This document shows, piece by piece, positions 2,051 to 64,000 of a stretch of 64,000 nt of DNA. Under the pieces are notes generated by a model, which saw only the letters and a list, made by a program, of their open reading frames with translations, had not been told where the DNA came from and did no database searches. This DNA is from Blepharisma stoltei ATCC 30299. Taxonomy: Eukaryota; Protista; Ciliophora. The position numbers and the translations under genes were made by a program. Positions within the stretch are counted from its first letter, which is position 1. Every line of letters starts with the position of its first letter. The stretch spans positions 310,001 through 374,000 of the forward strand of contig CBFDEM010000003.1 in assembly GCA_965603825.1 (NCBI GenBank). The letters are read 5' to 3'.

Positions 2051-3712
2051 ATGTTAAAAGAAGCTAAATACCAAAATTTTTGTACAGAAGAAAGTCCAGA
2101 GCAGTCCATGTCGCCCTATTTATCAACTCGGCAATCTTCGTATGAAGTCCCATCAGAACAGCATTACCACAAAAAAAACGTAAAGTCTCATTTCTCTAAA
2201 ACTGAAAGCCCAGGACAGAGTCCCTGAATTTCTGATACTATAAGGCCTCATGCACCAAAAACTCCAAATTCAAGCTTCTCTCCTGTCCGATCTCAAAGAA
2301 AGAGATTTTCTTGTGATTTATCCTCAGAAACTTCTCGCGCAATTCATCATTCTTATGGAGTCCCAAAAACTTGAATAACTCCGACTATTCCAGAGGAAAA
2401 TGGCAGTAAGCATTCTATTTATGATACAAATATTGGCCCAGGAGATTATGATCTTTTTGATAGACCTTTCACTCCTGGAGGTTACATATCTGCTGAGCCA
2501 AGATTCGAAAACACCTTTGAGCAAAAAGTTGAATCTTTTATTCAGCAAGTGAAAACCTTAAATAAAAGAAAAATTCCAAAGCCAATTTTTGTGAAGAATG
2601 TTGATTTAAGCAGATTTTCCCCTCCAAATAAAGAAAGGGAAAATTTAGAGAAATTCAGAAGGAGGAGTGTTAATTTCGAAGTTGTGAAATTGACCAGATC
2701 TATGATTGAAAAAGCAAAAAAAGTGTCTAGAGAAACAAAGTATAGAGAGAAAATGCAAAAATACGCATATAACCAAATGAAAAGTGAAGCAAAGCAGGTC
2801 ATGAAATCTTGAATACTTTTAATGAGTATCGTTGGATTCAGTACTGTAATCCATTATAAAGCAGAAGGGAAAAAAGTAATTGTTATTTAGAAATTAAAAT
2901 GCAGAGCAAAAAATCATCTTACCTTTCTGCTCAACATTTCAAGAGCAATTGGAAAATTTAGAATTCTCCTAAATAAAGTGAGGTGGAATCTCCTTAAAAG
3001 AAAATTAAAAGAGCATTTCCCAATAATTCAAAGATGGGTTAAAAACAGAAGAAACAAATTTTTAAATGCTGTTACGAATCAAGTCGAAGTCCTTGTTACA
3101 GGCAATACAATGTTCGATTTGATGCTAAAATACCGGAAAGAAAAAAAGGCTTTTCAAAGTGGATTATTAAGCCTTATTAAAATCAGAAAAGCAAGAATTT
3201 TATCTTTAAATTTGCTGTGAGAAAAAGTCGAAGAATCATTATCAAGTTTCCTGAAGAAATCAGGAAAGCTAAAAGTTGACAAAATCGGAAGGCTCATCCC
3301 AAAAAAGGTTCGAGAAGAATGCATTAATAAATATTATAACTCACAAGTGAAACTTTATTTGGAAAAACTGAAATTATATAAAACTCAATGTAAAGAAATA
3401 GAATATTTGAGAAATCATGAAATGAATATATTTGACTGCAATAATCCTCAAAAAGAGAGTTTGTACCCTCCAAAGCCAACATTTCAGCTGTATAGCAATT
3501 ATAACGTTATGAGAAAAATAATGTTGAAGGCCTATAATCTTTACGCTGATTCATTTAATGAAGAGGATAAATTCAAGCAAGATTATAAAAATAAGATTCA
3601 AAAAGCTAAAACAAGAGTCCTTGAGCCTGCTAAATTCCACAGATCTATCACTTCTGTCAAAAATTCTAGTGAAAGAAGGCATTTTTCTTTAACTCCTACT
3701 GTGTTTCCATAG
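2051..3712 (+). CDS. Hypothetical protein with PGDY motif, tandem paralogue of the upstream gene
   Basis: ATG 2051 is in frame with ORFs 2549, 2978 and 3347 through several TGA codons and intron 2876-2890; ends TAG. Confidence 0.75.
2876..2890 (+). other. 15-nt spliceosomal intron
   Basis: GTAATTGTTATTTAG; removes an in-frame TAG. Confidence 0.85.
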
Positions 3713-36500: not shown

Positions 36501-39500
36501 ATGCTTATTTAAAACAGGGTCAAGCAAAGGATTTAATGTTTCGCCTACATCTTCAATTAGCATAGGAACTCCATCCCTTAGACAAGCTTTTAAACTCCTT
36601 TCAAAGTCTTTATCAGTCTGCTTAATAAGTTTCAGTCCCTTTGACTCCTCCATCTTTCTAATCCACCTATTAGCCTGCTCTTGAGGATCAATCATAAGTG
36701 GCCATCTTTCTGACCTAGTGACCAAAATTGCATTGCTAACACTCACAGAATCAGTAGGAAGAGTCGCAATATTCCATTCTCTAATTACAAGTGGATCGCC
36801 CATTACGTCAATTAAATCAAAATTGCTGCTGAATGGTATTCCAAGCTCTTGACATTTGCTCATCCAAAAGGCTACTAGCTTGTTTCTATATAACCCAGAA
36901 AAAGGTCCATAATAGTTGATACAAGCTGCTGACAAATAAATGTCTCCTAAAATATTTCGCAATTTTTCTGTCAGTCTGTCCACTGAAATTTTCCATCTTT
37001 GGTGCTCATCTTTAAGACCTTCAGTTAATACAGAAGCTCTTGAAAGTCTTAAATTTGTGGTCTGGATTTCATTGTCTAAGCTGATTTGCTCATCTAGTAC
37101 TGCTTTAAATTTGGCCTCAAGTCCTGCAACCTTTTCTTGTTCGACTCTTAATCTGTTCTGTGTATCAGCTAAATTTGCAACGGCTTCAGCTAATGTTTTG
37201 TTGAGCTCTTCTAGTCTTTTTCGTTTAGGCTCGACTTCTTTTGATACTTGTGCGTAGTTTACTATGGCATAGACCCACTCACATAGAGATTTAGATGCGA
37301 CATTTTGGCCGCCAACTTTTTCAGGAGTAAAGTCAGGGAGACTGGCAATTTTATTTTTCAGCTTTTTGAGGGTGACTGGCTTTATACTGTCTTTCGGGAA
37401 TTTTATTAGAGTATCTAAGAAGTTGTTTTGGAGGATTTTTCTGATGGATTCCCAAGAAGTCTGGGCTTCTAACAAGATAGCGATCGCTTCAAGAGTGAAC
37501 ACAACTAGTTTAGGAGGGTTGGCGAAGGTTCTGATTTCTGCTATATCTTTTGTGTTTATATTTCCTAATGCTCTGATTGCTTCTTCTAATATAGGCATGG
37601 CTTGGTTCAGGTCAGCTTCAGCATCTTCTTGTAGGACTTTGATTTCTTGAGTTTTCATGTTTACCTCTCTTTCCTCATCTTCTACAATTTCTCTAACTTT
37701 ATTTGCTTGGACTGTATCTACTTCAAGTTTTTTCCCTAATTCTTCACATTCTTTTTTATTTACTTCTAAAACAGGTGCTAGATTCACAAGTGTTTTTTGC
37801 ATTTCCTGCACATCTAAATTAGTCTTAATTAACTGGTCAACACCATTTCTGTATCTTTGTCGGGCTCCGCTTAGCTCTTTCTGTTTTTCTTCGAGGAGCT
37901 TGAAATAGCCAGATATTAAATCAATGTAACTTTTTGGAGTGATATACACTTTTCTGTTTAAAATTTGGTAAAACTCATCAGCCATTTCAATGACACTCTG
38001 ATGGACATCAACGCATAATCGAGCTAAAGCTGCTTTTACTTTCAAAGACTCATCCCTTGGTAAGAAGTCAATACTCAAATCTTGGAATTTGCTTTCAGAC
38101 ACACTTAAAAGTGCATCATTAGGCCATGGATCAACCCAATCAATTGTGCAGCAATTTACTAATGATGGGAACATTCTCATTCGGACTCTCAAAGCATCAC
38201 CAACAGGACTCATGCATAGAACAATATGCAAGTTTTCTCTCACCCTTTGTATGAAAAAGTTGTAAACGTTTTCAAACACTTTTTCCTTTTCTGCAACAAT
38301 TCTAAGATCTTGTTCAATAGGATCAAGCTCTTCTTTTGTAAAGAGATTAGGCACTTCTCCAGAATTTAAAATATTGTTTATGTCTTCAAGAAAAGATTCA
38401 CTTATTATTTGGGTGTCAGTCAGCAAAAATACTGATGGCTTTGGAATCACCCCTCCTGCTGCCACAAACAGCTTTTTCAAGTCTTCTCTAAAAGAAGCTA
38501 ACTTATAGTCCTTGGTCACTTGAATTTGGAAGAATTCACAATGGCACATAAAAGCAGCCAGTTTCGTAAGTGACTGTTTTCCACACCCGCCGACACCAAT
38601 TAGCATAGCATTTCCTCTCTGTTGCCGTAAAATTCTGCACAGCCTAGATAGATGTTCAATTGCATCATTAAAGAAGACTAGTTTCATTTCGTGGGTTCCT
38701 ACTGAATTATACTCATCAAGGAACTCGTTTACTCTCCTCATAAGAATTTGTGTGCTGCCCACCATCTCGTACTCTCTTTCGTCCATAGCTAAATCCCCTT
38801 TAAGGAAATCTGCAAAAATGATGGTTTTTTCAACAAATACTTGATCATGGGTTAAAGCAAGTCTGAAATGCTGACCAAGGATTTTTGTGACCATTTCTGT
38901 GAACCAGCGCTTGTCTTGCTTATTAATAAGTCTGTCATGGAACACTCTCATTGCTTCGTGAACCCAAAGGAAAATCACACTATCAGGGTTATTCAAACTT
39001 CTAGGTTTGCCCATAAGAATCCCTTGGAATACTTTAGAAACATCACGAAGGTTGAATAAATAATGTGACTTAGCTGGAGTTGGCAATAGTTCTACACTAA
39101 TTTGCTGATAAATGTGAATGGTAGCGGAAACGATCTGTGGGACTATCGCAATGACCTCACTTTTCCAGCCTTTACTATAGAAGCCATCACAAATAGTCTT
39201 GAAAATGGTTATCATATTTTCTTCACTTGTATGTGGAATACACAATACATGGAAATGCCTTGTAAACCTCTGGGTTAGTTTGTTTCGTCCTCCTTCAGGT
39301 GGCGCTGCACAGCAGATAAGTGTGGTGTCTACAATTCTTAATGGGAACTTTTTCTCGCGATCATATATAAAGCCTTGATCGCAAAATTGACGCAAAAGCT
39401 CTATTGGTGGTTGGGCTCCAAACTTTTCTACAGCCGGCATATTAACGTCATCTATCAGTAAGGCTACTTTTTTGGTCCCTGGACCACCAAGTAAGTCTTT

Positions 39501-42500
39501 TCTTTTTGCGTCAAGTTTAGTAACAATTGAGTTTTGGGTGTAGAGCGATGAAGTTTGTGCTGAAAACGTGATGAAAATGGGGTACATGTTGTCGGTTTCT
39601 TTCATGCTTGTCAAAGTATTTGTGATGATTACGGATTTTCCTACTCCTGTGTAGCCAGTTATGAAGACTGGGTGCTGAATGCTTATATTGTATTTAAGAA
39701 GGTGCTCAAAACGTATTGTATCTTTAGTAGGAACGAGCAGCTGAAAATAACTCACATCAGGGTTATACACAAATTCATTTTTCATGGAATCCCACTGCTT
39801 GTAATCGCCTTGGATTTTGTTGGAAACAACACAAGAGTCATACAATGATCCCTTGGGTAAGTCTACATTAAGATCTGAAGATATAGCAGAGTCGAACTTA
39901 ACCATACTATTGGTATCTAAAGCGCCTCCAATCGACCAAGTCAAGCAGAACACAAATATTTTATCAAGATACTTCTTAAACTGCTCAATATTATCATTAA
40001 ATCTTGGATTTCTATCAAACTGAGCCACTGCTTTTAATAAGTTGCAAAATGAATTAATCAATGAATTGGTCATGGTTGGTATTGGCTCAGACAATCTTTG
40101 TACGATTGATAAAGCTTTACCCATATAAGTGCTTATAAGTGTAACTAAATGATCCCTTTGCTCAGGCTGCCATTCTGATAGCTCTTTGGTAATCCATGTT
40201 TGTATAAGAGCTTTCCAGCCAACAGCTTCGATATTCATATATACCATACCGCAACGAGAGACAGTAGCTGGAGAGGCTGAAGAAAGATCAGCGACTTCGA
40301 AGAGCATCCTCATTTCTGGCTTAAGTTTTATTCTTTCTTGGTTTGCCAAACATAGCATCATATTGTCATCAAGGACTGTGTTCATGTTTTCAATCCATAA
40401 TGAGTCTACTGGTCCATCAAATACAACCCACCGCCTTGTGAGTTCTTCTTTTTTAGCAAATTCTCTCATAATTGAGCTGGCTAAGCCATCTTTCCAGTCA
40501 AAAGTGACTTCGTTGTATTCACCATATAATTCACCCATTGAAATTGCTTTAGGATTTAGTATTTGGAATTGTACTTTTTGGTAGCTCTGGTTGCGAGAAT
40601 TTTTCATTCTCAGCAGAGTCAAGGCTTGTGCCAAAATTTTGTAGCAAATCGATTTTCCTGCAGTTGCAGGCCCCACAATCATGACACCAAATCTAACCTC
40701 AAAAGTTTCAAACAGCTGTATCACTTTATTCACAAATGTATCAATCGGCTGTAATCGTTCTTTATCAATGCATTCTCTAATTGCTGCTTCTAGCTCTCCA
40801 TAATCCACATTAGGAATATCAACATCTGGAAATAAATCTTGCACAATCGCATTAAATAAGACTAAATCTTCCTTCAAAAACTTCGGGACATTTGAATCTT
40901 TCATAGCTCTTATCAAAATGATATCTTCAGTCAGATGAGGCTCTTTTCTTTTCAAAGAACCAGCCATGTTCAGCACACTTTTTACAGCTCTCATACCAAA
41001 ATCATAATGGTCTTGCTGAGAAAGCTGTTCTGAAGCAAGCTTATAAAGCTTCGTCATTTTACCTGACAAGTGTTTGGCATTTTTGAAGCCTTCAGCATAT
41101 AGCATGATTTCTGCAATAAGAGTATAGTCAGGAACCATCATAGAAACAGGCCTAAACAGAACTTTTAAGTTGTCAGGGAGTTCAGTTCTGCCAGCATAGC
41201 TTGGGTTCATGGTAATAAACACGCCAGTTTCTATCCTCAGTAGAACTTTTTTGTCTTCAAAAAAGAATTCTGGTTTGTTGTCATCTTTAGACTGCTTAAT
41301 AATTCTAAGCTGCTGAGCAATAACTGAGAGAACCTCAATATCAATTCTATTGAACTCATCCAAACAGCTCCAAGAGCCTGTGTAGCAGAGCCCCATAAAG
41401 AGTTTTTCCATCATTTGGTAAGTGATTTGTTCAGAACAGTTGAAAACAATGCAATATTTGCCCATAGCTTTGGCAAGGTCTTTTACAGACTCAGTTTTAC
41501 CAGTACCTGCTGGGCCTGCAGGAGCTGAGCCTAAGTTGATTTTCATAGCCCCTGTGATGGTCATCCAGCACCTATCAGTAAGCGGAGTAATGACTAGCCT
41601 TGTGGTAGCTCCCATAAATTCGAACCCATACTCCAAGTCAGCATTCAGCTGAGAAATTTTGAATTTCTCTTCGAAATCAGCCCAATAGTAGCGTAAATGT
41701 TTTTGCCATCTAAAATCGCTTGCAGAAGTGACTTCTTCGTCTTTAAGCATCTCTATAGTATCTCTATTATGGACATCTTGAGTGACAAGAGCTACAATTC
41801 TTCGTCTCATTGCTAAAGTTAGCTCTTCTCTTACAAGATTTGTAAGTTCTTCCAGATATCCATTGATAACATCATGTCAATCAGTCAGAGACTCACTTAC
41901 GTCACTTTTTCCAGACAAATTCTCCTCTGTGCTTCAGGTCCACATAATCATAGCAGTGCATAGGATGACTTGGCTTACCAAATCAGTGCTCAAAATGAAA
42001 TCTTTGCGAGATAGGTCACCATATTTTTTGATGGCTTCTCTGATATAGCGACGCAATGACTCACTCATTTGTGTTTCAAGCGTTTTCAGCCACTCATCAG
42101 GATTTCCTTTAGACTTGATTTTGGAGTGCAGCGTCAAAGTTTCTTTCTCTGCTGAAATCAGCCCAGTAAAAGACTCTGCTTTGTCTTCTTCAAACTCTAG
42201 CTCATAGATATTCTCAAACATACTCTTCAAGTGGGTCTGAATTTCCCTTGCATTTTGTGAATTAGAAAGAATTATCAATAACTCATCGTTAGAAAGGAAG
42301 AAAAATCTAGGGAAATTGACCCTTTGTTTATCAAGATGCTCTTCTATTTTCTTCTGCAGTTTTTCTAAGTTTTTGTTTGTGTCTTGCAAGCTTTTAAGAA
42401 GCCCTTCTTCTGTAGCAGCTTTTAGTGCATTGGGAGAGTCCCACACTTTTTTCATTCTTTCTTTGAAAAAGGTGTCAATTGTCAAAAATGCTTTGTGGCT

Positions 42501-45500
42501 TTTATTAAGCTTTTTTGCAATATCTCCACTTCTGAAGATTTTGTCAAGCTCGCCCCATTGTTTTTGGCATAGAAGTCATTCATCAAGAGTGGCAGCAAAG
42601 ACTTTGAAAACTTTGTTCCAATAGTCAACTTTTTCAAACATTGGGCCTACGAATCTATTAGAAATTAAAGTTGAAAGACCAGCTTGAGAGTCTTCAAGCT
42701 TAACCATGATTTCGTCAACTTCTTTAAATATATAGTTCTCTTCGACTTTTTCAACGTGGAATTCAATATTGTCCCAGCCTGATACAATCTCGCTGAGCTG
42801 GTTTTGGATTTCTTCTTCTTTTCTAGCCCTTAATGCAATTTCTGCAATTTCTTCTCTCATATTGTTGACTTTGATGTCCAAAAGCTTTCTTAAAGTAAAA
42901 GTTTCGTCTTTTATATCAATATCAATCCCAATAACTTTTCTTATCTGTTCCCAATGCCTTTCTTCTAGTCCTTTAAACCTTAAATCGCTGACAATTGGCA
43001 TTGTGTCTTTCAGCACGTCAACATATGACTTAAGCACTTGTGGTACATAATTTCCTTGGTCTTCCAGCGATTTGCACTTTTTAGCGATTTTATCGTACCC
43101 ATCGACTTCTTTGCTGATAACTTCTACATCAATTTTGCAAAATGGAGTATTGCTCCAGATCACAATTTTCTTTTCCCATTCATCCAAAGCCTTCCACATT
43201 TCATTCTTATTTTTCCAGTCTTTAAACGTATCTTCTACCTCTGGGTATTCTTTAGGCTCCATTTCTAGCTCTAAATAGTAATTTCTGAAATCCTTGGTAT
43301 CTTGCACCAAATTTACTACTTTTTCTCCGATATCTGCTAAAAATGCAATGTTTTCTTGCTTATTTGCATCTTTATTAGCGAAATTTTCATTTTTAAGCAG
43401 CTCTTTGATATCGTTATTTCTTTTTTCTACTGAATGTGCGCTCTCCCTGAGCATTCTAGTAAATTTAGTCTTATCATTTTCTCCACGCTCATAAAAGGCT
43501 TGCATTTTTGTCCTTAGTGAGTCTAATTGTGTCAACGTTTCGTTATATTTTCTTTTATTAAGATCAGTGAATCTAATGCTATATGCTTCCATGAGCTGCA
43601 TTAAATCTTTCAAATCATTGACGCGATTTGTGATGTCTTGCAAGCTGTCTTCAATCACCTTCATATGCTTGACCACATTTATGTATTCCTCTACTTTTTT
43701 AGGGATTCCTTTGATATTGTTATTGTATTCTCCCAAAGTTTTGGTCAGTTTCATTGCTGAGTCTAAAGCAATTTCTGGAAGCAGCTCTTCTATTTTTTGC
43801 AAACAGTGTTTTGGGGATGGGATGAGCTTTCTCTTAATGTTCAGGACATGTAGCTGGAATATCCCAACGTCTTCTTCTTCCTTCATTGTTTTGAAATCGT
43901 GGATCTGCCTTTTATATTCATCAATTGCATGCTTAATTTCTTCAATTTCTGCATCTCTGTATTTCTCTATATCCATTCTTGAATTTTCGATATAAATGTC
44001 AAGATTTGGCAGCAAATGCTGAGAGAAATTTACAAGTGTGGCGAACGAGATATCAATTCCATCCTTAATGTCGCTGCCAATTTTCTTTATCATTTCATCG
44101 TTTACTACCATCTGTAATAAGTCGAATTCTTCTTCTACTGGCTTTTCTTCGAATTCGTCTAGAGCTTTTGTATATCTTTCGAACTCAGGGACGCTTACAA
44201 GCATGTAGTTGTTTAGAAGCATGGTTAAGCCCCTTAGTATGGCGTCATCAATAGCAATTTTCACAGCTTCGTTGTCAGGCTCATAAAAGATTTCTCGAAG
44301 CTCAAAATCTGAATTGATAACCAGCAGAGGGCTGTGCTGCCTTCTTTGCCCAATAAATTTTTTATCTTTTTGTCCATAGTCGAAATTGACGACTTTTAGT
44401 ACTTTTTGTGTGGATTGGACTGATAAGCTCATTTTTGCATCAATAATTTGATAGTCACATAGTCTAATGAACTTCGCTAATCTTTTATAGTGGGTTCTTA
44501 TAATTGCTTCTTGGGTGTATGGCATTTGCTTATTTGATATATCACCAACCAAAAATGGGTCAGCGTCTTCTTCTGGGCCTTTTCTGCCTTCTTCATCATT
44601 GACTGTAGTTTTATTTTCTCTTCTAAACGCTTCTAATGATTCTTTGCAAGAAATCGCGACCAGATTTTTGATATTCGTTTCTAAGTCTTCAAGTTCATCC
44701 CCAACAGCAATTCTTTTGGAATCCTGAGCTGCATTGAATTCTTCAAGAGTCCTTACATTGTCAAAATTCAAGTCAAGTAAATCAAATCTTAATATTTTCC
44801 AGCTTTGATGGCGGACATTTAGCAGAGGGTCTCTAAGCTTATTATCAAGAATAAACAGCTCATGTTCTAGGTATTGAGCTCGTTCAGTCATCATATTTCT
44901 TCTTCTTAGATTTTTCCACAGTGAAAAGTTTTTCCATTTTTTATATTGTTTGAAAAATTTGATTTCTTTTAGCCTCTGATAAAGTTTATATTCTCTTTCC
45001 CATTCTTCTAGTGATAAAAAGTAAGCTTCCCCTTTGATAAAATGAGTGACACCTCTTGAGCTAATAGTAAGGTATTCATTTGGGTTCTTCTTTTTGAATG
45101 GGACTAGCTCAAAGTCATAAGAATCCCCTTTTCTGTTGCAGTACCAGAAATCCTCCATAAGTTCAGGGTCTGATTTTATGACTTGTATAAAGTCATAAGG
45201 TGTTGGGTTTTCGGCCACTTCATTTGTAAGCATTTCTTCTTCTTTTAAAGGTCTTGCATCTCCATGGACGTGCTTTTTCCTGTTCCCAGTCTTTAATGGA
45301 GGCAAATTTTTAATTTTGAAGCTTTTAGTTGACGACAAAAGTGGCTCAATTTTTCTTGTTTCATCAGAAAGTATTCCAAGCCTTTTGGTTTCTTCTGTAA
45401 ACACCATCGACCCACCTTTTGTCATTAAAGTCATAGCTGGGGAAAACACGGAGCCTTTAAGAAATGGGGAAAGGGGTTCAAGCGTTTTGGGTTTCCGAAG

Positions 45501-45668
45501 ATTTGTGGTGGATTGAGCATTCAGTGATTGAAGCCGAGGGACTAAGGATGGTTTTGGCTTGGAGAGCTGGAGTGCAGTGTTGCTGGCGTTTCTGGCTATG
45601 CCTTTATTTCCAAATTTGTCTTGGGGTCTAAGCCGATCTGCGAGTTTTCTTCTTAAATCTTCTTCCAT
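33546..45668 (-). CDS. DNAH6: Axonemal inner-arm dynein heavy chain, DNAH6-like (~4040 aa)
   Basis: Four ORFs in one frame via 4 TGA; FPRFFFLSNDELL, P-loops GPAGTGKT, GPATAGKS, GYTGVGKS and GVGGCGKQS; WPLMIDPQ; C-terminal HWIQRGAAFLCQLDD. The subfamily call is tentative. Confidence 0.93.
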
Positions 45669-45940
45669 ATTGTTTGTATTCTCAGTAACTGTTTATTTGA
45701 ATTATTTTTTGGATTTTATAAAATAAATATCTGTAATACTTGCTAGCATGCAATCACAGTATTGCTTTTCTATATAAGCGTTTTTAAATTTTATAATGTT
45801 TATCAATGCAATAAATATACGTTTTATATAAATAAAGTGATTTATAATAATTGCAAATATAGATATTTATCTAAAGATTTTAAAATATTTAATTCCTATA
45901 CATTTTTTTATATAATCGGCTTTTATATTAATATGCAAAA

Positions 45941-49492: not shown

Positions 49493-49829
49493 TATGAAGT
49501 AATAAAATTCATCGTTAATTATAAGGATGGATTATTAGTATTATGTATGGTGGATGGTTGCATATGGAATTCTCCATAATTTTTAAATTAGTTTTGAGCA
49601 TATTAGCCGATAATAAACGGCTATGTTAAATATGATCTGTGAGAAACTCAATGAAAATGTCGTTTATTATTATAATTTTAACTTAGAAAAATTAAAAAAG
49701 ATTTTTATTTTGCAATTAATATCCCAAAAATTTTTGTGGAAAATTGTTTATTGAAATTTCAATGAAAAAGCTAATTATTGTCTTATAGGTCATATTATGT
49801 TTACTATTATAGAGATGCTTAAATAGAAA

Positions 49830-52742
49830 ATGGACGAAGACTTATATGATGAATTCGGAAATCCAATCAATGCAGGGTCTGAGTCAGGAGAACCAGAAGA
49901 AAGTCCTCCACAAGATGAAGAAGTTGAAAATAATGAAGAAGGTCAAGGAATCATTGCAAGCGATAACATCATGATTGAGCCTACAGGCCAAGAAATTGTG
50001 CTTCACGAAGACAAGAGATATTATTTAGATCTTGACCAGGTCTATCCTGAGGCAGAAGCTCTTATTATGGAAGAAGACGCCCAGCCTATTACTCAGCCTA
50101 TTATCCAGCCTGTCATTCAAAAGAACTTCGAGTTTACCTTTAAAGAAGTTCCTTTTACCACTAGCCCTATAGAGTTTTTGGTATCTTTATCTCATTGTCC
50201 TGATTCAATCCGAAACATCGCATTTATTGGGCATCTTCACCATGGGAAAACGACTTTTATTGACTTATTAGTTGAAGACACTCATCCTCAGATTGTAAGT
50301 GATCCTAATGACCCATTAAAATACATGGATACAAGAAATGATGAAAGGAAAAGAGAAATTTCAATAAAAGCGAAGCCTTTGACAGTTGTTTTAGAGACTA
50401 GCAGAGAAAAAAGCTATTTATTCAATATTATTGATACACCTGGACATCCTAATTTCAGTGATGAAGTGACTGCTGGTTTAAGATTGGCTGATGGGGTCAT
50501 ATTAATTGTTGATGTCATTGAAGGCGTAATGATAAACACAAAACAACTTTTAATCCATGCTTTAGAAAATGAACTAAAAGTAATAGTGGTCATCAATAAG
50601 TTTGATAGACTGCCATTAGAGCTAAAGATTCCTCCAGGTGACGTATATTTCAAAGTAAAACACACTTTAGATGAAATAAACTCAATAATCTCAGCACATG
50701 CACCGTGGCATCCAAAAGTATCTCCTATTAATGAAAATGTGATTTTTGCGAGTGGGCTGTATGGGATGGCTTTTACATTAAGCTCTATGGCGAAAGTATA
50801 TACAAATATTTATGGACCAAATTTTGATTCTGAAGAATTTGCTAAAAGATTGTGGGGTGATCTTTATTATAATAAAGAGACTAGAAGTTTTGCAAGGAAG
50901 CCGCCAATAGGAAAGTCAAATTCAGATAGAAGCTTTATTGAATTCATTGTAGAACCAATTTATAAGTTATTAGGGTATGCTGTTAGTGAAGAAAAAGAGC
51001 AACTGGAAAAATTTTTAAGTTCAGTTGGACTTTTTATGAAGAAAAAGCATTATACATACGACTCTAAAACTTTATTAAAAATTGTACTGCGAACTTTCTT
51101 CAAAAAACCAAGCTGTCTAGTAGATCTTGCCGTAAAAAATTTTCCTGCTCCTTCTAAATCTAAGAAATTTGAACAAAACTACAAAGGACCTTTGGCTGGA
51201 GAAATTATTGAAGAGATAATTAAAGGAAAAGACACCGGGCCTTTAGTTGTTGACATTGTCAAGCAGTATCATGACTCTGAATGCAAATTTTTTTATATAT
51301 TTGGCAGAGTTCTTAGCGGAACATTAAGGCCTGGGGAATTAGTAAATGTTTTAGGTCAAAAATATTCAATTCAAAACCCTGAAGACAAATTCCAAGCAGA
51401 AATTGATAAAATTTATTATTTTAATTCTAGGTATAAGCTGCAAGTTCAAGAAATCCCTGCAGGCTGCTGGGCTTTAATAGAAAGTTCACAAATTGATATT
51501 CCCAAAACCTGCACAATAACTAGCCCTGATCTTTCAGAAAATATAGAAATTCTTAAGCCTTACAGATTCAGCACATCAAGCATAGTTAAAATTGCAATGG
51601 AGCCATATAACCCTTCAGATTTGCCTAAAATGCTTCAAGGTCTCAATTTTTGTTCTAAGAGTTACCCATTGCTTGATTTTAAAGTGCAAGAAACTGGAGA
51701 ACACGTCATAGCTGGCACTGGAGAGCTTTATCTTGATTCAGTGTTGCATGATGTGCGTGAGCTGTATACTGATATAGAAATAAAACTTTCAGATCCTTAT
51801 GTCTCATTTAATGAAACTGTCATAGACTCTTCATCTTTTAAATGCTTCGCTGAGACTCCTAATGGTAAAAATCGCTTTTCTATGATTGCTGAGCCATTAG
51901 AAGCTGTAATAGGTTCTGCAATAGAAAAGCATAAAATCCATATAAATTGGCCTCCAGAGAAGCTTTCGAGCCATTTTGAAGAAAATTATAATTGAGATGT
52001 TTTGGCTTCTTCATCAATATGGGCATTTGGTCCAGATTCATATGGCTCTAATATTCTCATAAATGATATATTGCCATATGAGAGAGACGATGATTTATTA
52101 GCAAGCATTAAAAATCCAGTTGTTCAAGGATTTCAATGGGCTTGCAGAGAAGGGCCACTATGTGAAGAGCCAATACGTTTGACAAAGTTTAAGATTTTAG
52201 AAGCTGCTATGGCAGCTGAACCAATTTATAGAGCAAGTGGCCAAATAATACCTACAGTAAGAAGGGTCTGCTATTCATCATTTTTGTTATCAAGTCCTAG
52301 ACTAATGGAGCCTTATTATTTAGTAGAAATTCAATGTACTCAAGACTGCATCCCAGCTGTTCATTTAGTTATGACAAAGAGAAGAGGACACATTGATATG
52401 GAAGAACCTAAGCCAGGCTCTCCACATTATACACTTCTAGGGACCTTACCTGTTATAGATTCCTTTGGGTTTGAAACTGATTTAAGAACCTACACAAGCG
52501 GTATGGCATTTTGTGTATCAATTTTCGACCACTGGGAAGTCGTTATTTCTGACCCATTAGATCGAAATATAAAGATCAAGCCACTAGAGCCTTGCCCAGT
52601 TCCCCATCTAGCCAGAGAGTTTATGCTAAAAACTAGACGAAGAAAAGGCTTGACAGACGACATCACAATTACAAAATTTTTTGATCATCCATTATTAAGA
52701 GATATGGCCAAAGAAGACCAAGATCTTGCACCATATTTTTAA
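49830..52742 (+). CDS. EFTUD2: U5 snRNP 116-kDa GTPase Snu114/EFTUD2
   Basis: [41 protein letters not shown] and [15 protein letters not shown]; TGA 51993-51995 sits at the conserved W of WDx[10 protein letters not shown]. Confidence 0.95.
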
Positions 52743-54803: not shown

Positions 54804-56588
54804 CTAATTCTGACTCTTTCTAATTAATTCTAAATCTTGCTTGATTGCTTGATTATCAGGATCCAATTTTAATGCTTGATTCAAATCTGCAGTAGCTGAA
54901 TAAAGCTGTCCCATTTCAGCATAAGCTTTAGCTCTTCTCCAGTGCAATCTTAACTGCAAAGAGGGTTTTGGCTCCAATTTAAATGCTTTATCCACAGTAA
55001 TTATTACATCCTGAGGGTTTTTTAATAATAAGTAGCAAGCAGAAATATTTGTATAAATTGAAGCTTTCTCTTCTTTATTTTTTTTACAAAGACCTAAAGC
55101 TTCCTTATATAGTTTTAAAGCTTCTTCTGCATTGCCATTTTTAAACGCATCGCTTGCAGACTGCTTAAGATTTTCATACAAAACCCTATTATTTTCTGAT
55201 GTATATTTCGAGGCAAGAATTTTTGCATGCTGATTTTGTGGCTCTATTTGCAATACTTGGTTAGCTAAAGCTAAAGACTCATCTTTATTTTCAATAGCTT
55301 CAGCTTTTCTCAATAAAACCTTGCATTTAAGTCTCAAATTATGACTGATCAACTCCAGAGCTTTATCACACATTTCCACACAATTATTTTTATCTTCTTT
55401 CTTTAAAAATATTTGTGCTAAATTTGCGATTGACAATTCATTCTCTGGGTCAATTTCCAAACTTTTTGTATATTCTATTTTAGCTTCATCGATTTTGTCT
55501 TCTTTATATAGCAAGTCACCTTTATTTTTTATTAAATTAGATTCTCGTCTTTTTTCAAGCATTTCAATATCTTTTTGGATACTTTCGTCATCAGGAATAA
55601 ATGATTTAGCAGAATTATATTCATCTATTGCCTCAGAAATCAATCCTTTTCATGCCAAAATGGCGCCTATTCTGACTTTGCAAATTCCTTTTAATAGATC
55701 TTCAGTGCATAAGCTAAAGCTTTTATATAGATCGTCCAATGCTTTTTGGAATTCGTAAATCTTCATATAACTAGCAGCTCTATTCATTAAGCATGCTAAA
55801 TTATTCTGATCAGCCTTTATAGCATTTGAATAAGCACTTATTGCGGACTCAAAATCACCTTTGGAAAATAGCTCATTTCCTTTATCTTTTAGCCATAATG
55901 GATGTGATTCGTGTACTGGGCCTTCTAAAGGTTTAATATTGTGAGGCAAAGGTGGCTCATTTTCATTGCTTTCTCTTGCAGGTACATTTGGGTTTTTTCT
56001 TGGTGTGAATTCAATTTTCTGTTTAAATGTTCCTCTTACTTCAGGCAAATCAGTTCTTTCTTTAAATATTTCATTATTTAAGCTTGGAATTGTGGAAGGG
56101 CTAAAAATGTCTTGCTCCGCTTTAATCTTTTCTTCTTCTTTTTTCTGCTCAATAACTCTTCTACGTTCATCATCCAGTTTCATTTGTTCTGTGACTGAAA
56201 AACGATCCATTTCGATTTTGTGCTTTTCCAAGGCTTCCTGGGTTTCTTTGGAATTTTGTTCAAATTCGGAAATAGAAAGGGCTCTACGTTGCTTTGAAAG
56301 ATCTTTATCAGAACATATGAGTGACTCCCAGGATTTTCCAATAATAAATTTGGCAAGAATAAGCTCCAAGCAAGTTTCTTTGGCGATTGCGCGATTAAGC
56401 GGACTTTTATAATCGATGTCTTCAGCAAGATCCCACTCCATGAACATTTTTGGAGATTTAAGATGAAACTTGACGTAATTTCGTGATAGAAAGAGATCAA
56501 AATAGCCTTTTTTACTGAGGATTGGATTTCGACAAGGAATAGTTATTTTTATGATTTCAAATTCCTGTTCCCAAGTATACTTGCTCAT
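54804..56588 (-). CDS. DNAAF4: Dynein axonemal assembly factor 4 (DYX1C1)-like CS + TPR protein
   Basis: N-terminal YTWEQ...YVKFH (CS domain), coiled coil, FTPR..VPARES and PLWLKDKGNELFSKGDFESAISAYS TPRs; one TGA at 55650. Confidence 0.8.
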
Positions 56589-56863
56589 TTTTAAAATTAT
56601 AAAACTAGAGTATTATGCTAAACGGAGATTTTTATTAAAATAATGAACATTTAATAAAAGATTAATTAGTATTTTTACCCATAATGTGAATAGTGAAATA
56701 TAAATCAATTAAATTAATAATTCGATGATAAAATTAAAAATTACTCTTTAATTATCACAAACAGTAGACTATTTTTAAAGTTAGTGAAAAGTATATATTT
56801 ATAAGCTATGTATTATTATAAATAGAAAATTTTTTCATAAGCTTTTGAAGTTATCTTAAGATT

Positions 56864-59800
56864 TTAACGATGAACGCTGTAAAAGCTTCTATTAAAGTTC
56901 GCCATTTCATACTGTCTTTGATAAAGATTTACAGCATCTTCGCCCGAAGCCACTCTCAAGATCTCTTTGCAAATTGCATTGGTGAGATTTTCCGCTCCTG
57001 AATGAGAATTTATATCTAAAAAGGCATTAGCTCCTCTGGTCGTTTCACCAATTTCTTCAAATGCACTACTTGAGCTTGGGCTTGTATAAAATCCATGAAT
57101 CGGAATTCCGTTTCTTGCAGCTTTTGCTAGCTCTTCATGATAATCTTCCATTGAAGAAATTTGGGAAGATTTATGCTTCTTTTTCTTGCTAAATTGATTA
57201 TTAAACGGACTTTGAGATGCAGTATTCACAAAGTCTCCAATAAGAATTACTTTAGAAATCTTTTCATGGTGATGTCTGTCATTAATATATTTCAATGCTT
57301 TATTGATGGCTTCATTTCCTTTTCCCCCTTGAGTGCGAATTTCTTTGATAAAGGATTCTAATACACTTGGCTTATTTGACCAAGGAGATGCTTGAAAAAT
57401 TAAATCATTAGGGCAAGAAGACGTTCTATAAATGCAATATTTAATTTGGAAACACCCTGGACTAACTGCTTTCTTTGCTAAAATTTCTCTAGCGCGCTTG
57501 AAAATCATCCCAATTGTATTCTTGGCATTTTGGAGGAGATGAGACATAGGCTCTGTAGCCTGAAGCAAAATAATGATATTATAGCTATTTTCTGTAAAGT
57601 TTGAGATGTTTTGTTCAAGTATGAAACTTTTGAACCCATCAAGATTTCCATGGGTGATATTATTTAAGAATTCAATGGATCTATCATGAGACTGTTTTAT
57701 GTATTTCACATGCTTATTTTCATTACTGTTTTTGGTTTCATAAAATTCGTTTCTTTTTTGACGCAAAAGATCATAGATTGTTGAATTATTACGAGCATTT
57801 AAAATATCTATATCATTGATTTGAAATTTTTGAAGCTCTTCTGCAAACAATACCATGCTGAATGATCCTTGCTGCCCTTGCCTTGCTGATCTACCCATAA
57901 TTTGAGTTTCTTCTGATGCCTCTTCGGATAAGAAAGTTTGAATTACATGGACTCCACCACTACTTTCAACGGTTTGATTTTGACATTTAAAATCAATTCC
58001 GCGTCCGAAGACTCTGGTAAACAAACTGACGTACCCAGATATTGTTGCCTGATTAATCATTCTATAGCGATCTCCTGACCTTAAATCTTCAGTTACCATT
58101 TGAAACTGATATTTTTTTCAGCTTGGATTAGAGGTATTATAAAAATCCAACAATTTTTCAGAAGTTTCGAAAAATATTAGAATTGCTCTCTCTCCTCGGT
58201 TGCTACCAATCATGCGATTGTTAATTTCGTCACTTATCCTTTGAAAATAATTTTGTTTATCATTTTCGACGTATATATCTGCATTTTCTCTAAAAATTCT
58301 ATTATTGTCTCCAAACACAGAAGGCATATAGGTGTAATTTCTTATATTATAGTCATTTTCAATTATATTTTTTTCATGGTGGCCAAGAGTTTTTAGAGTT
58401 CCTGTTACTCCCATAATATGAGTAAAATTATTTGGCATTTCAGCATAGGAAAAGTCTCCACATCTTATGCTAATTCCAATGTGATTTCCAAGGCTTCGTT
58501 TGCTAATGCGATTATTTTCATGCTCTTTATAATAAGTCCACATAGTATAATATCCATAGCTCGTATGGAATGACACTCCATCATGCATTTTATACCCTAT
58601 GCGATCATCTTGCAAAATGTACTCATGAGAGTCTAAGTATTGCAGATCATATATCATATCTTTTACTGCTTCAACAATCAATTCTTGATAATTAGAAAAA
58701 TAAGATCGACATTTTATAAATTCTTGAGATTTTAATATGTCTGCTAAATTGAGATTTCCATTTCTTCTGCTTCAAATTAGGTTAATTAGGTTTTTTATAA
58801 AATCATTCTGAAGGGTAGCAGCGGGCCTAAAAATTTTTCCATAAAATGATTTGCCAAAAAATACATCAACTTCATCAATCAACAATATTCTTGGTCTTTC
58901 AAGTTCCAGGTGAGTTCTAAAATCTGAATCTTCTGAGTTTTGATTTATTTCATTTTTAACAAATTCTCTTATATCTATTTTGCTATTGATCTCATTTTCG
59001 CATAGTTCATTGAAAGTTCCATAGTCGATTCAGTTTGAAATATGCAAGCAACTAAATAATTCGCTAAATTCTTCATGATCTCTTTTGCTTAAGTGTTCGC
59101 TGTAGCATGCACATCTTACACTGAATCCCAATATAGCTAGAATTGCTGATGCTAGACCTAAAGTTACAGATTTTCCCTCTCCTGTCAAAATTTGTATGAG
59201 ATTATTAGCAAATGTTATTTGGCCGCTATAGCCGATGCCAATCATTCTAAATATTGATAAAACTTGAACAGGATGAGGCGACAATATTTCTTTATCATTT
59301 TTCTCCTTTAAGTCAGGCTTAGTTTTTTTAATATTCAGTAAAGTTCACAATGTAGCTAAATATGCAAGAAGCTTTGGAATAATTTTTTTATCTATTTTGT
59401 TTAAGCTTGTAACAGAAGACACAGAGCCAAAATCAAAATCACTAATAGAGAACTTAGTAATTATCAATCCTGAAAGCGCATCTATTGCATCATTTATGCT
59501 TGAATCTGCTGTTATCTCTATATATTTGCTGCTAATCTTTTTATAAAACTTGCTATACTTTACAAACTGTTCTCTTAATGCAGTTTTATCTATATTAGAT
59601 CCATCTATTCTTTCCATAACATAATCTATATTAAATTTCTCTGTTCTTTCTGCCCATAGTCTATGCTTTTCAGTTTCAAAGAACTTATGTTCATTAATTA
59701 TTATAAGTCCAGTGTTCTCTTTTTCAAGCTTATCATAGATTGTTCTTACTTTTATGTTGCCGTGACTCTTAAATTGAATTAAAAGCTGGTCGATTAGCTC

Positions 59801-62800
59801 TTCAAGTGATTTCTTCATTGGAGGAAAGTTTATTGATATAGTTTTTATGCTGATTAATGATTTAGTAGCATCATCAATTGAGGTGAAAGAGCCTAAAGCT
59901 ATCTTTTTATAATTTTCTGCTTTTTTCCTGATTGTATTTTCTATCTTATCCAATATTTGTGTTAAATCTATCCCTTCAAGATGTATTGAATTTTTAAATG
60001 AACTTAAGAGTCTATGTCCAATTCTAAGCTTTGCATAATCAGCGTCTAAGAAATCATCTTTGGCTATACAATCTAATGTGCTTTGCTTGACTAAATCAAT
60101 TTCTGCTTTAATTGATTTAATACATTCATCAAAATATTGAGAGAAGTTTGAAATATGATTTTTAATCTCTTCAAACATTATCATTGCATGAAATTTTTCT
60201 TTTAATAATTTAAAGCGATCATCAAGTATTTTTTCGTGTTTTATTTCATCATCTTGGACTGTAAAACTCTTTAAATAATTCACAATCCCACCAAATTCAT
60301 TATTAAGTTCATCTCTAATTTCTGAGTAATTTTGACAATACGACAAATTCAAATAAAGTTTTATTGGATTGCTATCATAATAAAATTCTTCTCCAATTTC
60401 TTCATTATCACAATTTCCACAATGCAAAGATTTAAATTCTTTTAATGCCTTAAGCAATATGTCATATTCGCTGATTTTGTCAAGATAATATTTAGTAAAT
60501 TGCGTATTGTTAGGAGGTTTTGATAAGCTATAATTTCTATGTATAGATATAAAGAAATCTGACAAAGTAGAATAAGTATATTGAGTGAGCCTGTCAAGAG
60601 AAGATAATCTGTACCCATTTTCTATGTCAGTAAGTCTAATATTGAATTCTACTATTCTTTGAAAGTCTTTTCAGTTGTTTACAATAACATCTGCTTTCTC
60701 ATCTTTTAAGTTTCATATACAGCGACACAAAGCATCAAATTTTTTATTGATTTCATTTCCTAGCTTTTTATCAATAAGATTTTTCCCATCATTTCCTAAA
60801 GCTTTAAGTATGGACTTGTAGTGCTCATATATAGTTGCTTTTTCCAATGCTAATTCTAGATCATTTTGCTTTAAAGCATGGCATGCTTCATCAATTATTG
60901 AACTCAAGACACTTTTCAGCCTGTTCTTTGAATCATTTATTGATTTTGAACCCCTTCTATTATGCACGTCATCAATAATTATTTGACACAGTTTTTCTAA
61001 ATCCTTATCTCTAGTAGCGTTTTCTAGTAGAATGGCTCTTTCTTCCTTATTTAGCTTTAGGCTTTTTATCCATTCTTTAATTTTCAGCTTTACATCTTTT
61101 TCAATCTCTTCGGGCAAATTTTGATGAATACGTTCAATTGATTTAATTTTTTGTTTTTTATCGTAATAATTACTTTTGCTCATTTCTTCTTCAATAATTT
61201 CGATTTTTTTATTTAAAATTTGTTTGATTTTTTCAATGCAATCGATAAAATGAGGATTTTTTTGAGCTGCTTTTTCAAGTTCTTTAATAATATATTTTGG
61301 ATTGATACAATCTTTGTAGGATTCTATAGGGATGCTTTCAAAATTTTCTGGAAATGATTGTGGAAGATTTTCAATCCTTATTTTTAAATCCGAAATCTCA
61401 AACTCTAATAAGCTAGTAATTTCCGAAAAACTTAAAATGCAGGATATTTTTTCAAGATTTCCAATAAATGTTTCTGCATCATAGTAGCTATATTTATTAA
61501 TTGCCTGCTCAATTCTTATAATTCAATTTTTTATTCTATCCGCAAGGAAGCTATAAAACTGAGTTTCTGACTCAAAGAGGATTAATTTAGTCTCTTCATC
61601 AATATAGCTAAAAATTTTTTCTTTGGCATTTTTAATATTTTTTTGATTTTCCACAACATTGTTAATATTTTCATCATTAGTTTTGATGCTAGCCTCTTCC
61701 AAGCAATGTTGACTGTTTAGCATAAGGTTTGAAATAACCGATTGTATTTTATTTGAAATCATTCTGAAATTGCCACGCTTGTTGAGTTTATCCAAGCTAT
61801 TTATTAGTCTTTCTGCTTCAGAAAAATCTAAATTATGAATAAAATTAATGATATTTTTTTCAGTTTCACCAATTTGCTTGAAAAATTCATCTTGAATATT
61901 TGAAAATCGTTTAGAAAACGTGGTCTTATTAGCTATGATTTGATCTAATAAAGATAAGGATTCAAATATAAGCAAGGATAAGTAGTATTGATTTATTTGA
62001 TTCTCATGCTTATAGTGTTCAGACGTGTTAAAAAGCTCTTGCTCAATACGAATTATTTTAGTATTATATTCTTCAAGTGTATTTTCACATTTCAAATAAT
62101 CTACAATAGACTGAGATTTATTTCTTATATCTATTCCTTTTTCATATGCCAAATATAATCCCTGAGAAGCTTCTTTGCATTGGGCTTCTGACAACGGTTC
62201 TTTATTGATGAACCTCTGTATTATATTGAAAGAGTTATCAAAGCTTTGATTGATTTGCTGTCAGCTCTTCTGAAGAAACTCAGTAAATTCAGTTCATAAA
62301 CATTCAGAGTTTATATAAGAAATTTCTTTGCAGATTTTTAAATAATTAAATGCATGATTTGCCTTCGTTCAATTAAGTGTATTTTCCTTAGTCTGAGTGC
62401 TTTTGATTTGTTTTTCTTCTTCGTTTGCAGATGTTTTAATTTCATCAATATCTTCATGATAATTTTCTTCAAATGAGTCAGTTTTCAAGTTATTTTGATC
62501 CTCATTAAATGATTTTGAGTCTTCCTTTTCATGAAGAAATTCACTAGTAATTTCATGTAAAACTTGATTAATACTACTTTCAAATTTATTACAGTAGCTT
62601 TCTCCAATCTTTTCTAATGATGGTATGAACTCTTTTAAAGTTTCAATTGATTTCATTTGATTCACTAAATCAAAGGCTTTTTTAATTGAACTGGAGTGTT
62701 CGATGCTTAAGTCAATATATTTAAATTTCGAATCAATTTCATCCACGAAATTCATAATTTCTTGGTTAATTTTGCCTAATTCTGATTCGAAAACACCAGG

Positions 62801-64000
62801 GCAGTATTTTTCAAATCATTCCCCTTCTTTTAATCCTGCTAGAGAGATAGATAGTAATTTAAAATCTATTCTTTCAGAGTTTGCGAAACTATTAAGAATC
62901 TCTTTAATATTATTCTTAAACCTCATCATTTTTCGTTCTATTTCAAATTTAAGACCTTTATGTGCAGCACTCACTTTTACCTCAATTTCATTAATTTTTG
63001 TTAGTAATTCCATTTCTTCAAAAATTGCTTTAGCAGCTGATAAGCCACAGGTATCATTATCTTTTATGATATCAAATATTTTTGCACTTAGTTTATTATA
63101 ATGATCAGAATATTGCTCTACTGCATTTGCGATAGAGGACTCTAAGTTTTCAATGTCAATAATCTCTTTGAACATATCTATTTCTTTAATATTGCTCAAA
63201 ATTTCGAAATGATTAATTATAGTATCAATATCATTTTCTTCAGTTTTATCCTTAGCGTATAATGGCGCTAAATTCCCAACTACAGCCAATATAGAAGATT
63301 TTATTATTTCTAAGAGTTCTTTATATTTTATGTCTAAATCACTCAAATTCAAGTATTCCCCAATATTTTTTAAGTATGTTTTAACTTGTCTGATGTTACT
63401 AGAACATAAATTAAAATCCTTAATTTCAAAACTCTTTTCTGCTTCCTTTATCATGTTAATAATAAAATTTTCATATATCAGCTTTAATTCAGAATTTTTC
63501 CCATTAAACTCTTCGAAAAATTCAGCAATAAGACTCAAATTTTTTAGTTTAGCTTTAGCAACTTCAATATCAAAATTTTCAATATTATTTTTTTCATTTC
63601 ATTTGAGCTGCTGCTCAATATTATTCAAGAATTCTTCCGGAGAAGGTGTTTCTCCTTTTAGATGGCTTTCTCTAATTTTTTCTGATTCTTTAATTTCATT
63701 GAAGCTGCACTTATATGCTTCTACTATATCTTTGAGTAAAACATTCTTCTCATGAACTGAACTATTGAATAGCTTAGTAGCAGAATGAAATATTTCATTG
63801 GTTCCTTCAATTACTGAGTCGACGCATTGTTTGTATTTTTCTTCATATTCTTTAAATAAAAAAGATAATGTTTTTAAATCTTCTAGCCTGTCTTTTATTA
63901 TAGAGTAGTCCCTTTTTCGTAGGGCAGTTTCAATCTCTCCTTTATGAATATCAATTTGACTTTGTATTTTTTCTCTTGATTCTGATGTCAAAAAACAATT
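56864..64000 (-). CDS. Giant helical protein with a SecA-like DEAD ATPase/helicase and a C-terminal vWA domain; 5'-partial (>2370 aa)
   Basis: Nine ORFs share one frame and are separated only by TGA. Motifs QILTGEGKS, YGTFNELCE, LLIDEVD, GVTGT, FGRGIDF and GGVHVIQTF...QIMGRSARQGQQGS; vWA-like IIILLQATEPM...GGKGNEA...VILIGD...GIPIHGFY. Confidence 0.82.

Follow-up and report, generated by a model that had tools for sequence, protein, structure and literature searches.

A giant protein gene of the ciliate Blepharisma stoltei combining a GIMAP-like GTPase, a SecA-derived motor and a vWA domain

SecA is regarded as the export motor of bacteria and plastids, working bound to the SecY channel. Proteins that carry its SecA_DEAD domain without the wing/scaffold part are known in PVC bacteria (PMC4452313), SecA_DEAD-bearing giant proteins have been described in Omnitrophota and Actinobacteria (bioRxiv 10.1101/2023.11.21.568195), and the effectors of Amoebophilus include GIMAP-type GTPase and 'SecA-like helicase-related' domains (PMC3482391). 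In this study, we report a gene of the ciliate Blepharisma stoltei ATCC 30299 that ends a 64,000-nucleotide stretch of contig CBFDEM010000003.1 (contig C3 below; positions 310001-374000, hereafter the window) in a genome assembly of 41.46 Mb and 64 contigs. The gene encodes a member of a soluble giant-protein family whose fixed order is well supported: a variable N-terminus, a helical bundle, a GIMAP/AIG1-like GTPase of the TRAFAC class, a linker of ~1,500 residues, a SecA-derived ATPase and a vWA domain. The motor has shed the parts with which SecA engages its channel. We read the family, at about even chances, as a GTPase/SecA-motor/vWA machine that handles polypeptides in host-microbe conflict.

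The gene was read on the minus strand with TGA as tryptophan. As proposed in an initial annotation made from the sequence alone, a single frame runs off the window: from base 64000 it meets no TAA or TAG before the stop codon given in Table 1, and only 12 in-frame TGA codons interrupt it (first bases 63601, 62818, 62371, 62296, 62263, 61525, 60715, 60673, 59347, 59032, 58774 and 58120). The remaining two frames of the same span contain 230 and 359 stops. The nine fragments counted in that annotation do belong to one frame, although the count itself did not hold, since cutting at TGA yields 13 pieces, ten of them of at least 60 residues. In the upstream extension on the same contig the frame stays open, with no further TGA, to an ATG at extended coordinate 66208 (C3 position 376208), which follows immediately after a TAA and lies 2,208 bases outside the window; the gene therefore comprises 3,114 codons, 12 of them TGA and 8 TGG, and is intron-free. 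The conceptual translation is identical to a deposited B. stoltei protein (P0001, 3,114 residues), which was retrieved by searching with the last inter-TGA piece, earlier searches having used the pieces between TGA codons separately. Introns were considered and rejected, as the deposited protein corresponds to the uninterrupted open reading frame (ORF) and the assembled sequencing contigs described below contain no joints over 56864-62863.

Reading TGA as tryptophan is supported by two TGA codons, at residues 2288 and 2479, that fall on tryptophan columns nearly invariant and invariant, respectively, in 40 homologues from other organisms, and by a TGG to TGA variant at W2943 (window 57380-57382) in sequencing run X3, which is synonymous under this code. 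TGA is also read as sense window-wide, where long ORFs appear on both strands when only TAA and TAG are taken as stops. The heavy use of TGA, which the initial annotation had connected with fast evolution, parallels the low G+C of the gene. The dynein heavy chain gene in the same window (33546-45692, minus strand; 4,049 codons) shows the opposite tryptophan codon usage, with 4 TGA and 55 TGG.

The motor occupies residues ~2290-2870 of the 3,114. Pfam SecA_DEAD matched it with 34.4 bits using the Walker-A piece and 30.5 bits using the whole protein, at a cut-off of 24.6, and was found in 39 of 40 homologues; P-loop_SecA and Helicase_C scored slightly under their cut-offs in P0001. SecA_DEAD alone is insufficient proof, because it also matches in a control genome of Sulfolobus, which is not known to have SecA. 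The NCBIfam matches were the SecA and SecA2 models only, with E-values down to 1.6e-8, and in phmmer searches of the PDB, SecA was the sole match of the Walker-A piece and the top and only meaningful match of the NBD2 piece. A family profile was built from an alignment (A1) of 40 members over residues 2280-3114. Against the PDB this profile found SecA chains at E 4e-16 to 3e-8, the best DEAD-box protein being Mss116 at 6e-5 and over NBD2 only. Against B. subtilis SecA it aligned in one stretch, family positions 58-524 to SecA 96-556, passing through the preprotein cross-linking domain (PPXD), and short motifs are shared with that SecA on both flanks of the PPXD and in the return strand ahead of motif III. 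Conservation across the 40 sequences, P0001 included, extends to Walker A, Walker B and motifs III, V and VI, and the motifs TGEGKS, DEVD, GVTGT, GRGID and GRSARQG were all found where the initial annotation had placed them.

The AlphaFold2 model of residues 2280-3114, computed on A1, had a mean predicted local distance difference test score (pLDDT) of 85.2 and a predicted TM-score of 0.82. In a Foldseek search with this motor-vWA model, ranks 1-35 were all SecA (E 1e-16 to 9e-10), followed by DDX21 at 5e-8. The VIA alignments to SecA extend to model residue ~625 and SecA residue ~740, and full SecA aligns over ~170 more residues than a motor construct lacking the PPXD. By profile and fold alignments, therefore, ~170 residues beyond the generic superfamily 2 (SF2) core match SecA, comprising the insert (model ~185-315) and a helix (model 532-573). 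The insert, ~130 residues in the model, stands at the PPXD site between DEVD and GVTGT, which are ~150 residues apart, and is matched by the profile through SecA 210-390; Pfam SecA_PP_bind was silent. Between NBD2 and the vWA domain there are only a 42-residue helix and a short one, the wing domain, two-helix finger and C-terminal tail being absent from both the model and the Pfam results. The motor is thus well supported as SecA-derived, and since wing, finger and tail are absent it is not a SecA orthologue.

An ordinary DEAD-box helicase was rejected, as SecA ranked ahead in profile (~1e-15 vs 6e-5) and fold scores, Pfam DEAD stayed under its cut-off (17.8 bits vs 26) and the insert between motifs II and III is large. 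Pfam, NCBIfam, phmmer, the PDB profile search and Foldseek agree in placing the motor with SecA rather than with DEAD/DEAH helicases, as the initial annotation had suggested; the full SecA build that membership of the SecA family might imply was not borne out, the wing/scaffold part with its two-helix finger being missing. The same evidence bears on a nucleic-acid-dependent SF2 sensor or translocase, in which the SecA-derived core would once more bind RNA or DNA, in the manner of RIG-I-like receptors, with the GTPase and vWA serving signalling assemblies. SecA stands far above helicases by profile (1e-15 vs 6e-5) and by fold, the protein still has the scaffold helix and, where SecA has its PPXD, the insert, and Pfam searches of pieces and whole protein found no nucleic-acid-binding accessory domain, so that we regard this explanation as doubtful. 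A true SecA translocase, feeding a SecY- or Sec61-type channel in the mitochondrion or the endoplasmic reticulum, could draw on the SecA-type motifs and the PPXD-like insert. The two-helix finger, wing domain and C-terminal tail are absent, however, no transmembrane segment is predicted, the motor begins 2,300 residues into a giant protein and its position in the tree below is far from canonical SecA; we give this explanation almost no credence.

The vWA domain that follows the motor has an alternating strand/helix fold (model residues 597-835, pLDDT mostly 85-95). In Foldseek it matched integrin beta I domains at E ~2e-7, and Pfam VWA_4, VWA_2 or VWA was matched in 16 of the 40 homologues. 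The consensus of the metal ion-dependent adhesion site (MIDAS) loop in the family is D-A-T-G-S-M, kept by the five C14 paralogues examined (see below). In P0001, and in no other of the 40 aligned sequences, Q and P replace the MIDAS Asp and Ser; the downstream GD of the site is still present. The proposed vWA fold with a degenerate MIDAS (QATEPM, where the family has DATGSM) was thus recovered, the degeneration being peculiar to this copy.

The N-terminal GTPase that had been guessed to lie past base 64000 was found there. Upstream of the window the translation contains, in canonical order, G1 GSTGCGKS (residue 520), G3 DTPG (590), which is followed by LMDT, and G4 TKYD (664), and none of the G1 and G3 residues varies among 36 sequences. 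Pfam MMR_HSR1 matched this domain at its cut-off, with AIG1 and RsgA under theirs. A model of residues 190-900, computed on a second alignment (A2, 36 sequences; pLDDT 86.5), consists of a helical bundle, the GTPase core and more helices. In Foldseek the GTPase model matched GIMAP7 best (1.9e-5), then Irgb10, Irgb6, GBP5, Irga6, GIMAP2 and Toc34. A predicted homodimer of the GTPase domain (two copies of residues 500-745) scored 0.00 and carries no weight for or against dimerisation. Residues 1-190 had no Pfam match; in the ESM Atlas the neighbours of residues 1-200 were C2, NT-C2, RPGR1_C and DUF1005 at scores of 0.87-0.92, which lie under the level of trusted recognition, so that the N-terminus is possibly C2-like.

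The linker between GTPase and motor (residues ~740-2290, ~1,500 residues) has no Pfam domain above cut-off, and Pfam searches of the linker and N-terminal pieces returned only sub-threshold noise (TPR_AP5Z1, Rad17, PTPA). A phmmer comparison found it conserved in 59 of 252 relatives. The helical stalk of more than 1,500 residues that had been proposed stood in part: outside the GTPase core the model of residues 190-900 is all-helical, and residues 900-2290 are poor in Pro and Gly. No transmembrane segments were predicted in P0001.

When the last 417 residues were used as query, 1,898 cluster representatives were found at E<=0.001 and 302 at E<=1e-30 (50% identity clusters). Family members are mostly 2,500-3,600 residues long with the match located C-terminally, and all three modules of P0001 are collinear with those of its relatives. 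Their database names are automatic or empty, UniProt giving 'SecA family profile domain-containing protein'. Eukaryotic members occur in Blepharisma, several Tetrahymena species, bdelloid and monogonont rotifers, Hydra vulgaris, Reticulomyxa, Arcella, Hexamita and the choanoflagellate Helgoeca; the family is patchily distributed and has expanded separately in individual lineages. The N-termini differ between members and most carry no annotation; a U-box, GBP together with jacalin, ankyrin or RickCE protease domains turn up occasionally.

A count of paralogues, suggested at the outset, gave nine SecA_DEAD loci in the Blepharisma genome: the gene on C3 and eight within 100 kb of contig C14 (positions 647906-747382; L005-L015). 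The SecA_DEAD scan of the nuclear genome found only these nine giant-family loci and no canonical SecA. In the C14 cluster, intact genes of 2,709, 3,043 and 3,448 codons stand next to copies broken by TAA/TAG stops or frameshifts. It includes a recent inverted pair, 721712-732055 on the minus strand and 738254-747382 on the plus strand, with dS ~0.12. For this pair dN/dS was 0.52 overall, 0.13 in the motor, 0.3-0.9 in the vWA and tail and 0.7-1.0 in the linker; purifying selection acts on the motor.

These features bear on a housekeeping role, in which the protein would be a mechanochemical remodeller of the midasin/Rea1 or MoxR-vWA kind, stripping assembly factors off a large complex or remodelling membranes or cortex, with no link to conflict. 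The layout of NTPase, long helical linker and C-terminal vWA/MIDAS resembles midasin, the low motor dN/dS of 0.13 indicates strong purifying selection and part of the family shares a conserved linker. On the other hand, the distribution is patchy and not universal, the tandem expansion includes broken copies, the N-termini vary, one paralogue has lost its MIDAS site, and close relatives, some with a U-box, occur in obligate intracellular bacteria. We consider a housekeeping remodeller unlikely.

Prokaryotes were scanned with one genome per species. Bacterial relatives were found in Legionellales, other Gammaproteobacteria, Chlamydiae, the Wolbachia of Tribolium, Margulisbacteria and an alphaproteobacterial metagenome-assembled genome (MAG), some of them matching over the motor only. 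The closest relatives outside Blepharisma include proteins on genuine bacterial contigs. P0157, a protein of 3,046 aa, has a U-box at its N-terminus; its contig, 216 kb long and from a gammaproteobacterial MAG, places it among pcnB, folK, rpmB/rpmG, radC, dut and phosphoglucomutase. P0154 (L018) adjoins hemE, rubredoxin reductase and rarA amid large TPR proteins. In the window a gene for a TPR-repeat protein of ~603 residues, with one in-frame TGA, adjoins the Blepharisma gene downstream (54804-56612, minus strand); these shared TPR neighbours are probably a coincidence. P0159 (L020) adjoins pdxA and ksgA and is followed by a protein of 1,398 residues that weakly matches the C-terminal domain of Coxiella CBUA0006; this fits a Coxiella- or Legionella-like, host-associated bacterium. 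The Chlamydiae MAG G004 contains at least seven SecA_DEAD loci including canonical SecA (L051, L053, L057, L059-L061), with several ORFs of 2,500-3,500 residues, and is a case of expansion of SecA-derived giant proteins within one chlamydial genome. The Wolbachia of Tribolium confusum (L062, G003:C6:108000-127000) has two SecA_DEAD ORFs ~7 kb apart: one is complete, with 1,515 residues and only the motor, at its C-terminus, and the other is an open frame of ~3,900 residues on a more distant branch.

A maximum-likelihood tree of the motor was built from 59 rows and 498 columns (LG+C20, with SH-aLRT support) and rooted with three canonical SecA sequences from the same bacterial genomes, omitting the duplicate-locus rows L023, L055, L056 and L058 and the truncated L044. 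Purely bacterial branches form a basal ladder, followed by a crown group of all 24 eukaryotic and six bacterial rows. Outside the crown group, a Chlamydiae member combines the GTPase module and motor without a vWA domain, and several Gammaproteobacteria members carry the vWA. The four Blepharisma proteins form a clade with support of 100 in which P0001 branches first and has the longest terminal branch among them (0.58); of the Blepharisma paralogues examined, this C3 copy alone lacks the MIDAS residues. The labels of the eukaryotic rows change at least twice on well-supported branches. The comparison with bacterial SecA suggested by the initial annotation thus placed the eukaryotes inside the bacterial branches of a SecA-rooted tree, with a single eukaryotic clade as a surviving alternative. 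Its description of a eukaryotic SecA-like protein holds in that eukaryotic members exist, and fails if taken as purely eukaryotic, as full-length relatives are present in Legionellales-like, Chlamydiae and Wolbachia genomes. We read the GTPase/SecA-like/vWA architecture as of putatively bacterial ancestry, the family having probably begun in intracellular bacteria, and some bacterial members bear host-directed domains such as the U-box. Several eukaryotic lineages have since come to house the family and to multiply its members.

Four sequencing runs (X1-X4) of one study, assembled as contigs and presumed to be RNA, were compared with the gene. The contigs tile the 3' 3.2 kb, from 56864 to ~60100, and are patchy further 5'; their depth is 8-12 at the 3' end and drops to 0-4 toward the 5' end, a bias that would fit poly(A) RNA without proving transcription. 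They contain no joints and no indels and cross the TGA codons at 58120, 58774, 59032, 59347 and 60715. The initial annotation had been open to refutation by a lack of transcript across the TGA junctions: 5 of the 12 are bridged without joints, in runs whose RNA nature is a presumption. Contigs of X4 differ from the window at ~2% of bases (56864-58189) and those of X1-X3 are near-identical to it, which suggests that X4 represents a second strain or allele in the study. Among 35 variant codons in the runs, 16 were synonymous and 19 non-synonymous.

The variants, together with the MIDAS loss, the long terminal branch (0.58) and the position of the gene as a singleton away from the main cluster, could be taken to indicate that this copy is a decaying relic of an endosymbiont-transferred gene, transcribed and functionless. 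Against decay stand 3,114 codons free of TAA, TAG and frameshifts, ATPase and GTPase motifs that are all intact, and 12 TGA tryptophan codons, which indicate long residence under the ciliate code; the 19:16 ratio of non-synonymous to synonymous variants is also well under the neutral ratio of ~3:1, a value assumed and not computed for this gene. A relic is accordingly judged improbable.

The reading as a polypeptide-handling machine in host-microbe conflict can be set out in three steps. On binding GTP, the GTPase module would bring about assembly of the protein at a target, in the way of GIMAP, IRG and GBP proteins. The SecA-derived motor, with ATP, would then grip a polypeptide between the PPXD-like insert and NBD2 and pull or thread it. 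The vWA domain would hold the substrate or an adaptor, through its metal site in most members and metal-free in the C3 copy. The setting would be a host cell facing an intracellular microbe, in cell-autonomous defence or in symbiont control. We infer such a conflict or immune role because the family shows tandem expansion with broken copies, a fast-evolving linker and variable N-termini, and because its distribution is patchy, its GTPase is of the immunity type and the same machine, in some cases with a U-box, occurs in obligate intracellular bacteria.

Several points weigh against this reading. A role as threading motor, immune factor or secretion effector is a proposal for every member of the family. 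Pfam SecA_SW and SecA_PP_bind had no match in any of the 40 members, so that the polypeptide clamp is a putative one. As the MIDAS residues are lost, the vWA step in the C3 copy could not proceed as in integrins or midasin. The GIMAP match of the GTPase is ahead of the ribosome-assembly GTPases Nog1, Era and EngB by only ~1-1.5 Z units. For residues 900-2290, which are low in Pro and Gly, a helical state is putative. The RNA status of the four runs is a guess. Finally, a tree with monophyletic eukaryotes was not rejected (approximately unbiased test, p-AU 0.22), so that more than one number and direction of transfers would fit the crown group.

Table 1 Features of the giant-protein gene within the 64,000-nucleotide window
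Feature	Position in window	Strand	Basis
TAA stop codon	56864..56866	-	First TAA/TAG in frame; agrees with the end of P0001
vWA domain, residues ~2875-3114	56867..57586	-	AlphaFold2 fold, Foldseek, Pfam in homologues
Degenerate MIDAS QATEPM, residues 2883-2888	57545..57562	-	Alignment of 40 sequences
Post-motor helices, including the 42-residue helix equivalent to the first SecA scaffold (HSD) helix	57587..57844	-	AlphaFold2 model residues 532-573; VIA alignments
NBD2 (second RecA-like domain), GRGID and GRSARQG	57845..58351	-	Pfam Helicase_C, P-loop_SecA; NCBIfam; phmmer
NBD1 return strand, motif III GVTGT	58352..58426	-	Aligns with GMTGTA of B. subtilis SecA
Insert of ~130 residues between motifs II and III, at the SecA PPXD site	58427..58819	-	
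NBD1 (first RecA-like domain), Walker A TGEGKS 59168-59185, Walker B DEVD 58865-58876	58820..59284	-	Pfam SecA_DEAD; phmmer vs PDB
Span of the 12 in-frame TGA (Trp) codons	58118..63601	-	ORF scan; 2 on conserved Trp columns; 5 crossed by RNA-like contigs
Part of the linker inside the window, residues 737 to ~2308	59285..64000	-	Open frame

Elsewhere in the window, a homologue of the U5 snRNP GTPase Snu114/EFTUD2 was identified at 49827-52742 on the plus strand. An ORF of 1,885 codons lies at 3745-9399 on the minus strand; a 923-residue piece of it had no Pfam match at E<=1e-5. Bacterial contamination was rejected as an origin of the giant-protein gene on the basis of its 12 in-frame TGA tryptophan codons, its place between the dynein heavy chain and other ciliate genes, and the 576-kb length of the contig.

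No paper was found in the literature on the GTPase/SecA-like/vWA architecture or its eukaryotic members, and two eLife papers of the Aravind group do not contain it; the family thus does not appear to have been characterised already. Genes for a SecA-derived motor combined with a vWA domain and an immunity-type GTPase occur, in expanded numbers, both in the nuclear genomes of distant eukaryotes and in the bacteria that live inside their cells. Provided that this motor has kept the ability to handle polypeptides, it would be a new means of exerting force on proteins in the eukaryotic cytosol, and a candidate weapon common to both sides of the host-symbiont conflict. A wider proposal is that SecA-derived pullers serve as the engine of new GTPase-gated machines for defence or symbiont control in the eukaryotic cytosol, having originated as host-directed effectors of intracellular bacteria and been captured and expanded later by ciliates, rotifers, Hydra and amoebae; we offer this as a speculation that has perhaps one chance in a few of being right. 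The domain boundaries are defined well enough for expression and assay.

Compared with SecA and SecA2, the Blepharisma protein shares the two RecA-like domains with TGEGK(S/T), DEVD, G(V/M)TGT, GRGTD and GRxxRQG, a long helix after NBD2 and, at the PPXD site, an insert that separates motif II from motif III and aligns in sequence. Unlike them, it has neither helical wing domain nor two-helix finger nor C-terminal tail, and its motor shares one polypeptide with a GTPase and a vWA domain, is nucleus-encoded and implies no Sec channel partner. With the bacterial SecA_DEAD giants it has in common a SecA motor minus scaffold and wing within a large multidomain protein; the Omnitrophota giants differ in being membrane proteins of tens of thousands of residues, the Blepharisma protein having no transmembrane segment. 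Effectors of intracellular bacteria such as Amoebophilus likewise present a SecA-like motor alongside GIMAP-type GTPases and ubiquitin-system domains. Neither the order GTPase-linker-motor-vWA nor any eukaryotic member is described in these three reports (PMC4452313, bioRxiv 10.1101/2023.11.21.568195, PMC3482391).

The GTPase resembles GIMAP/AIG1, Toc34, IRG and GBP proteins in its TRAFAC fold, its G1, G3 and G4 motifs and the helical bundles that flank it, GIMAP2 and GIMAP7 being the best structural matches, then IRG, GBP5 and Toc34. By analogy only, midasin/Rea1 and the MoxR-vWA systems also connect an NTP-driven motor, by way of a helical linker of great length, with a vWA/MIDAS at the C-terminus, in one giant polypeptide or as a pair; in contrast to these, the motor here is of the SF2/SecA type and not an AAA+ ring, a GTPase is added and the MIDAS has been lost. 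Scaffold-less bacterial SecA_DEAD proteins were thus known, and what is new is a SecA-family motor in an unreported architecture and cellular setting.

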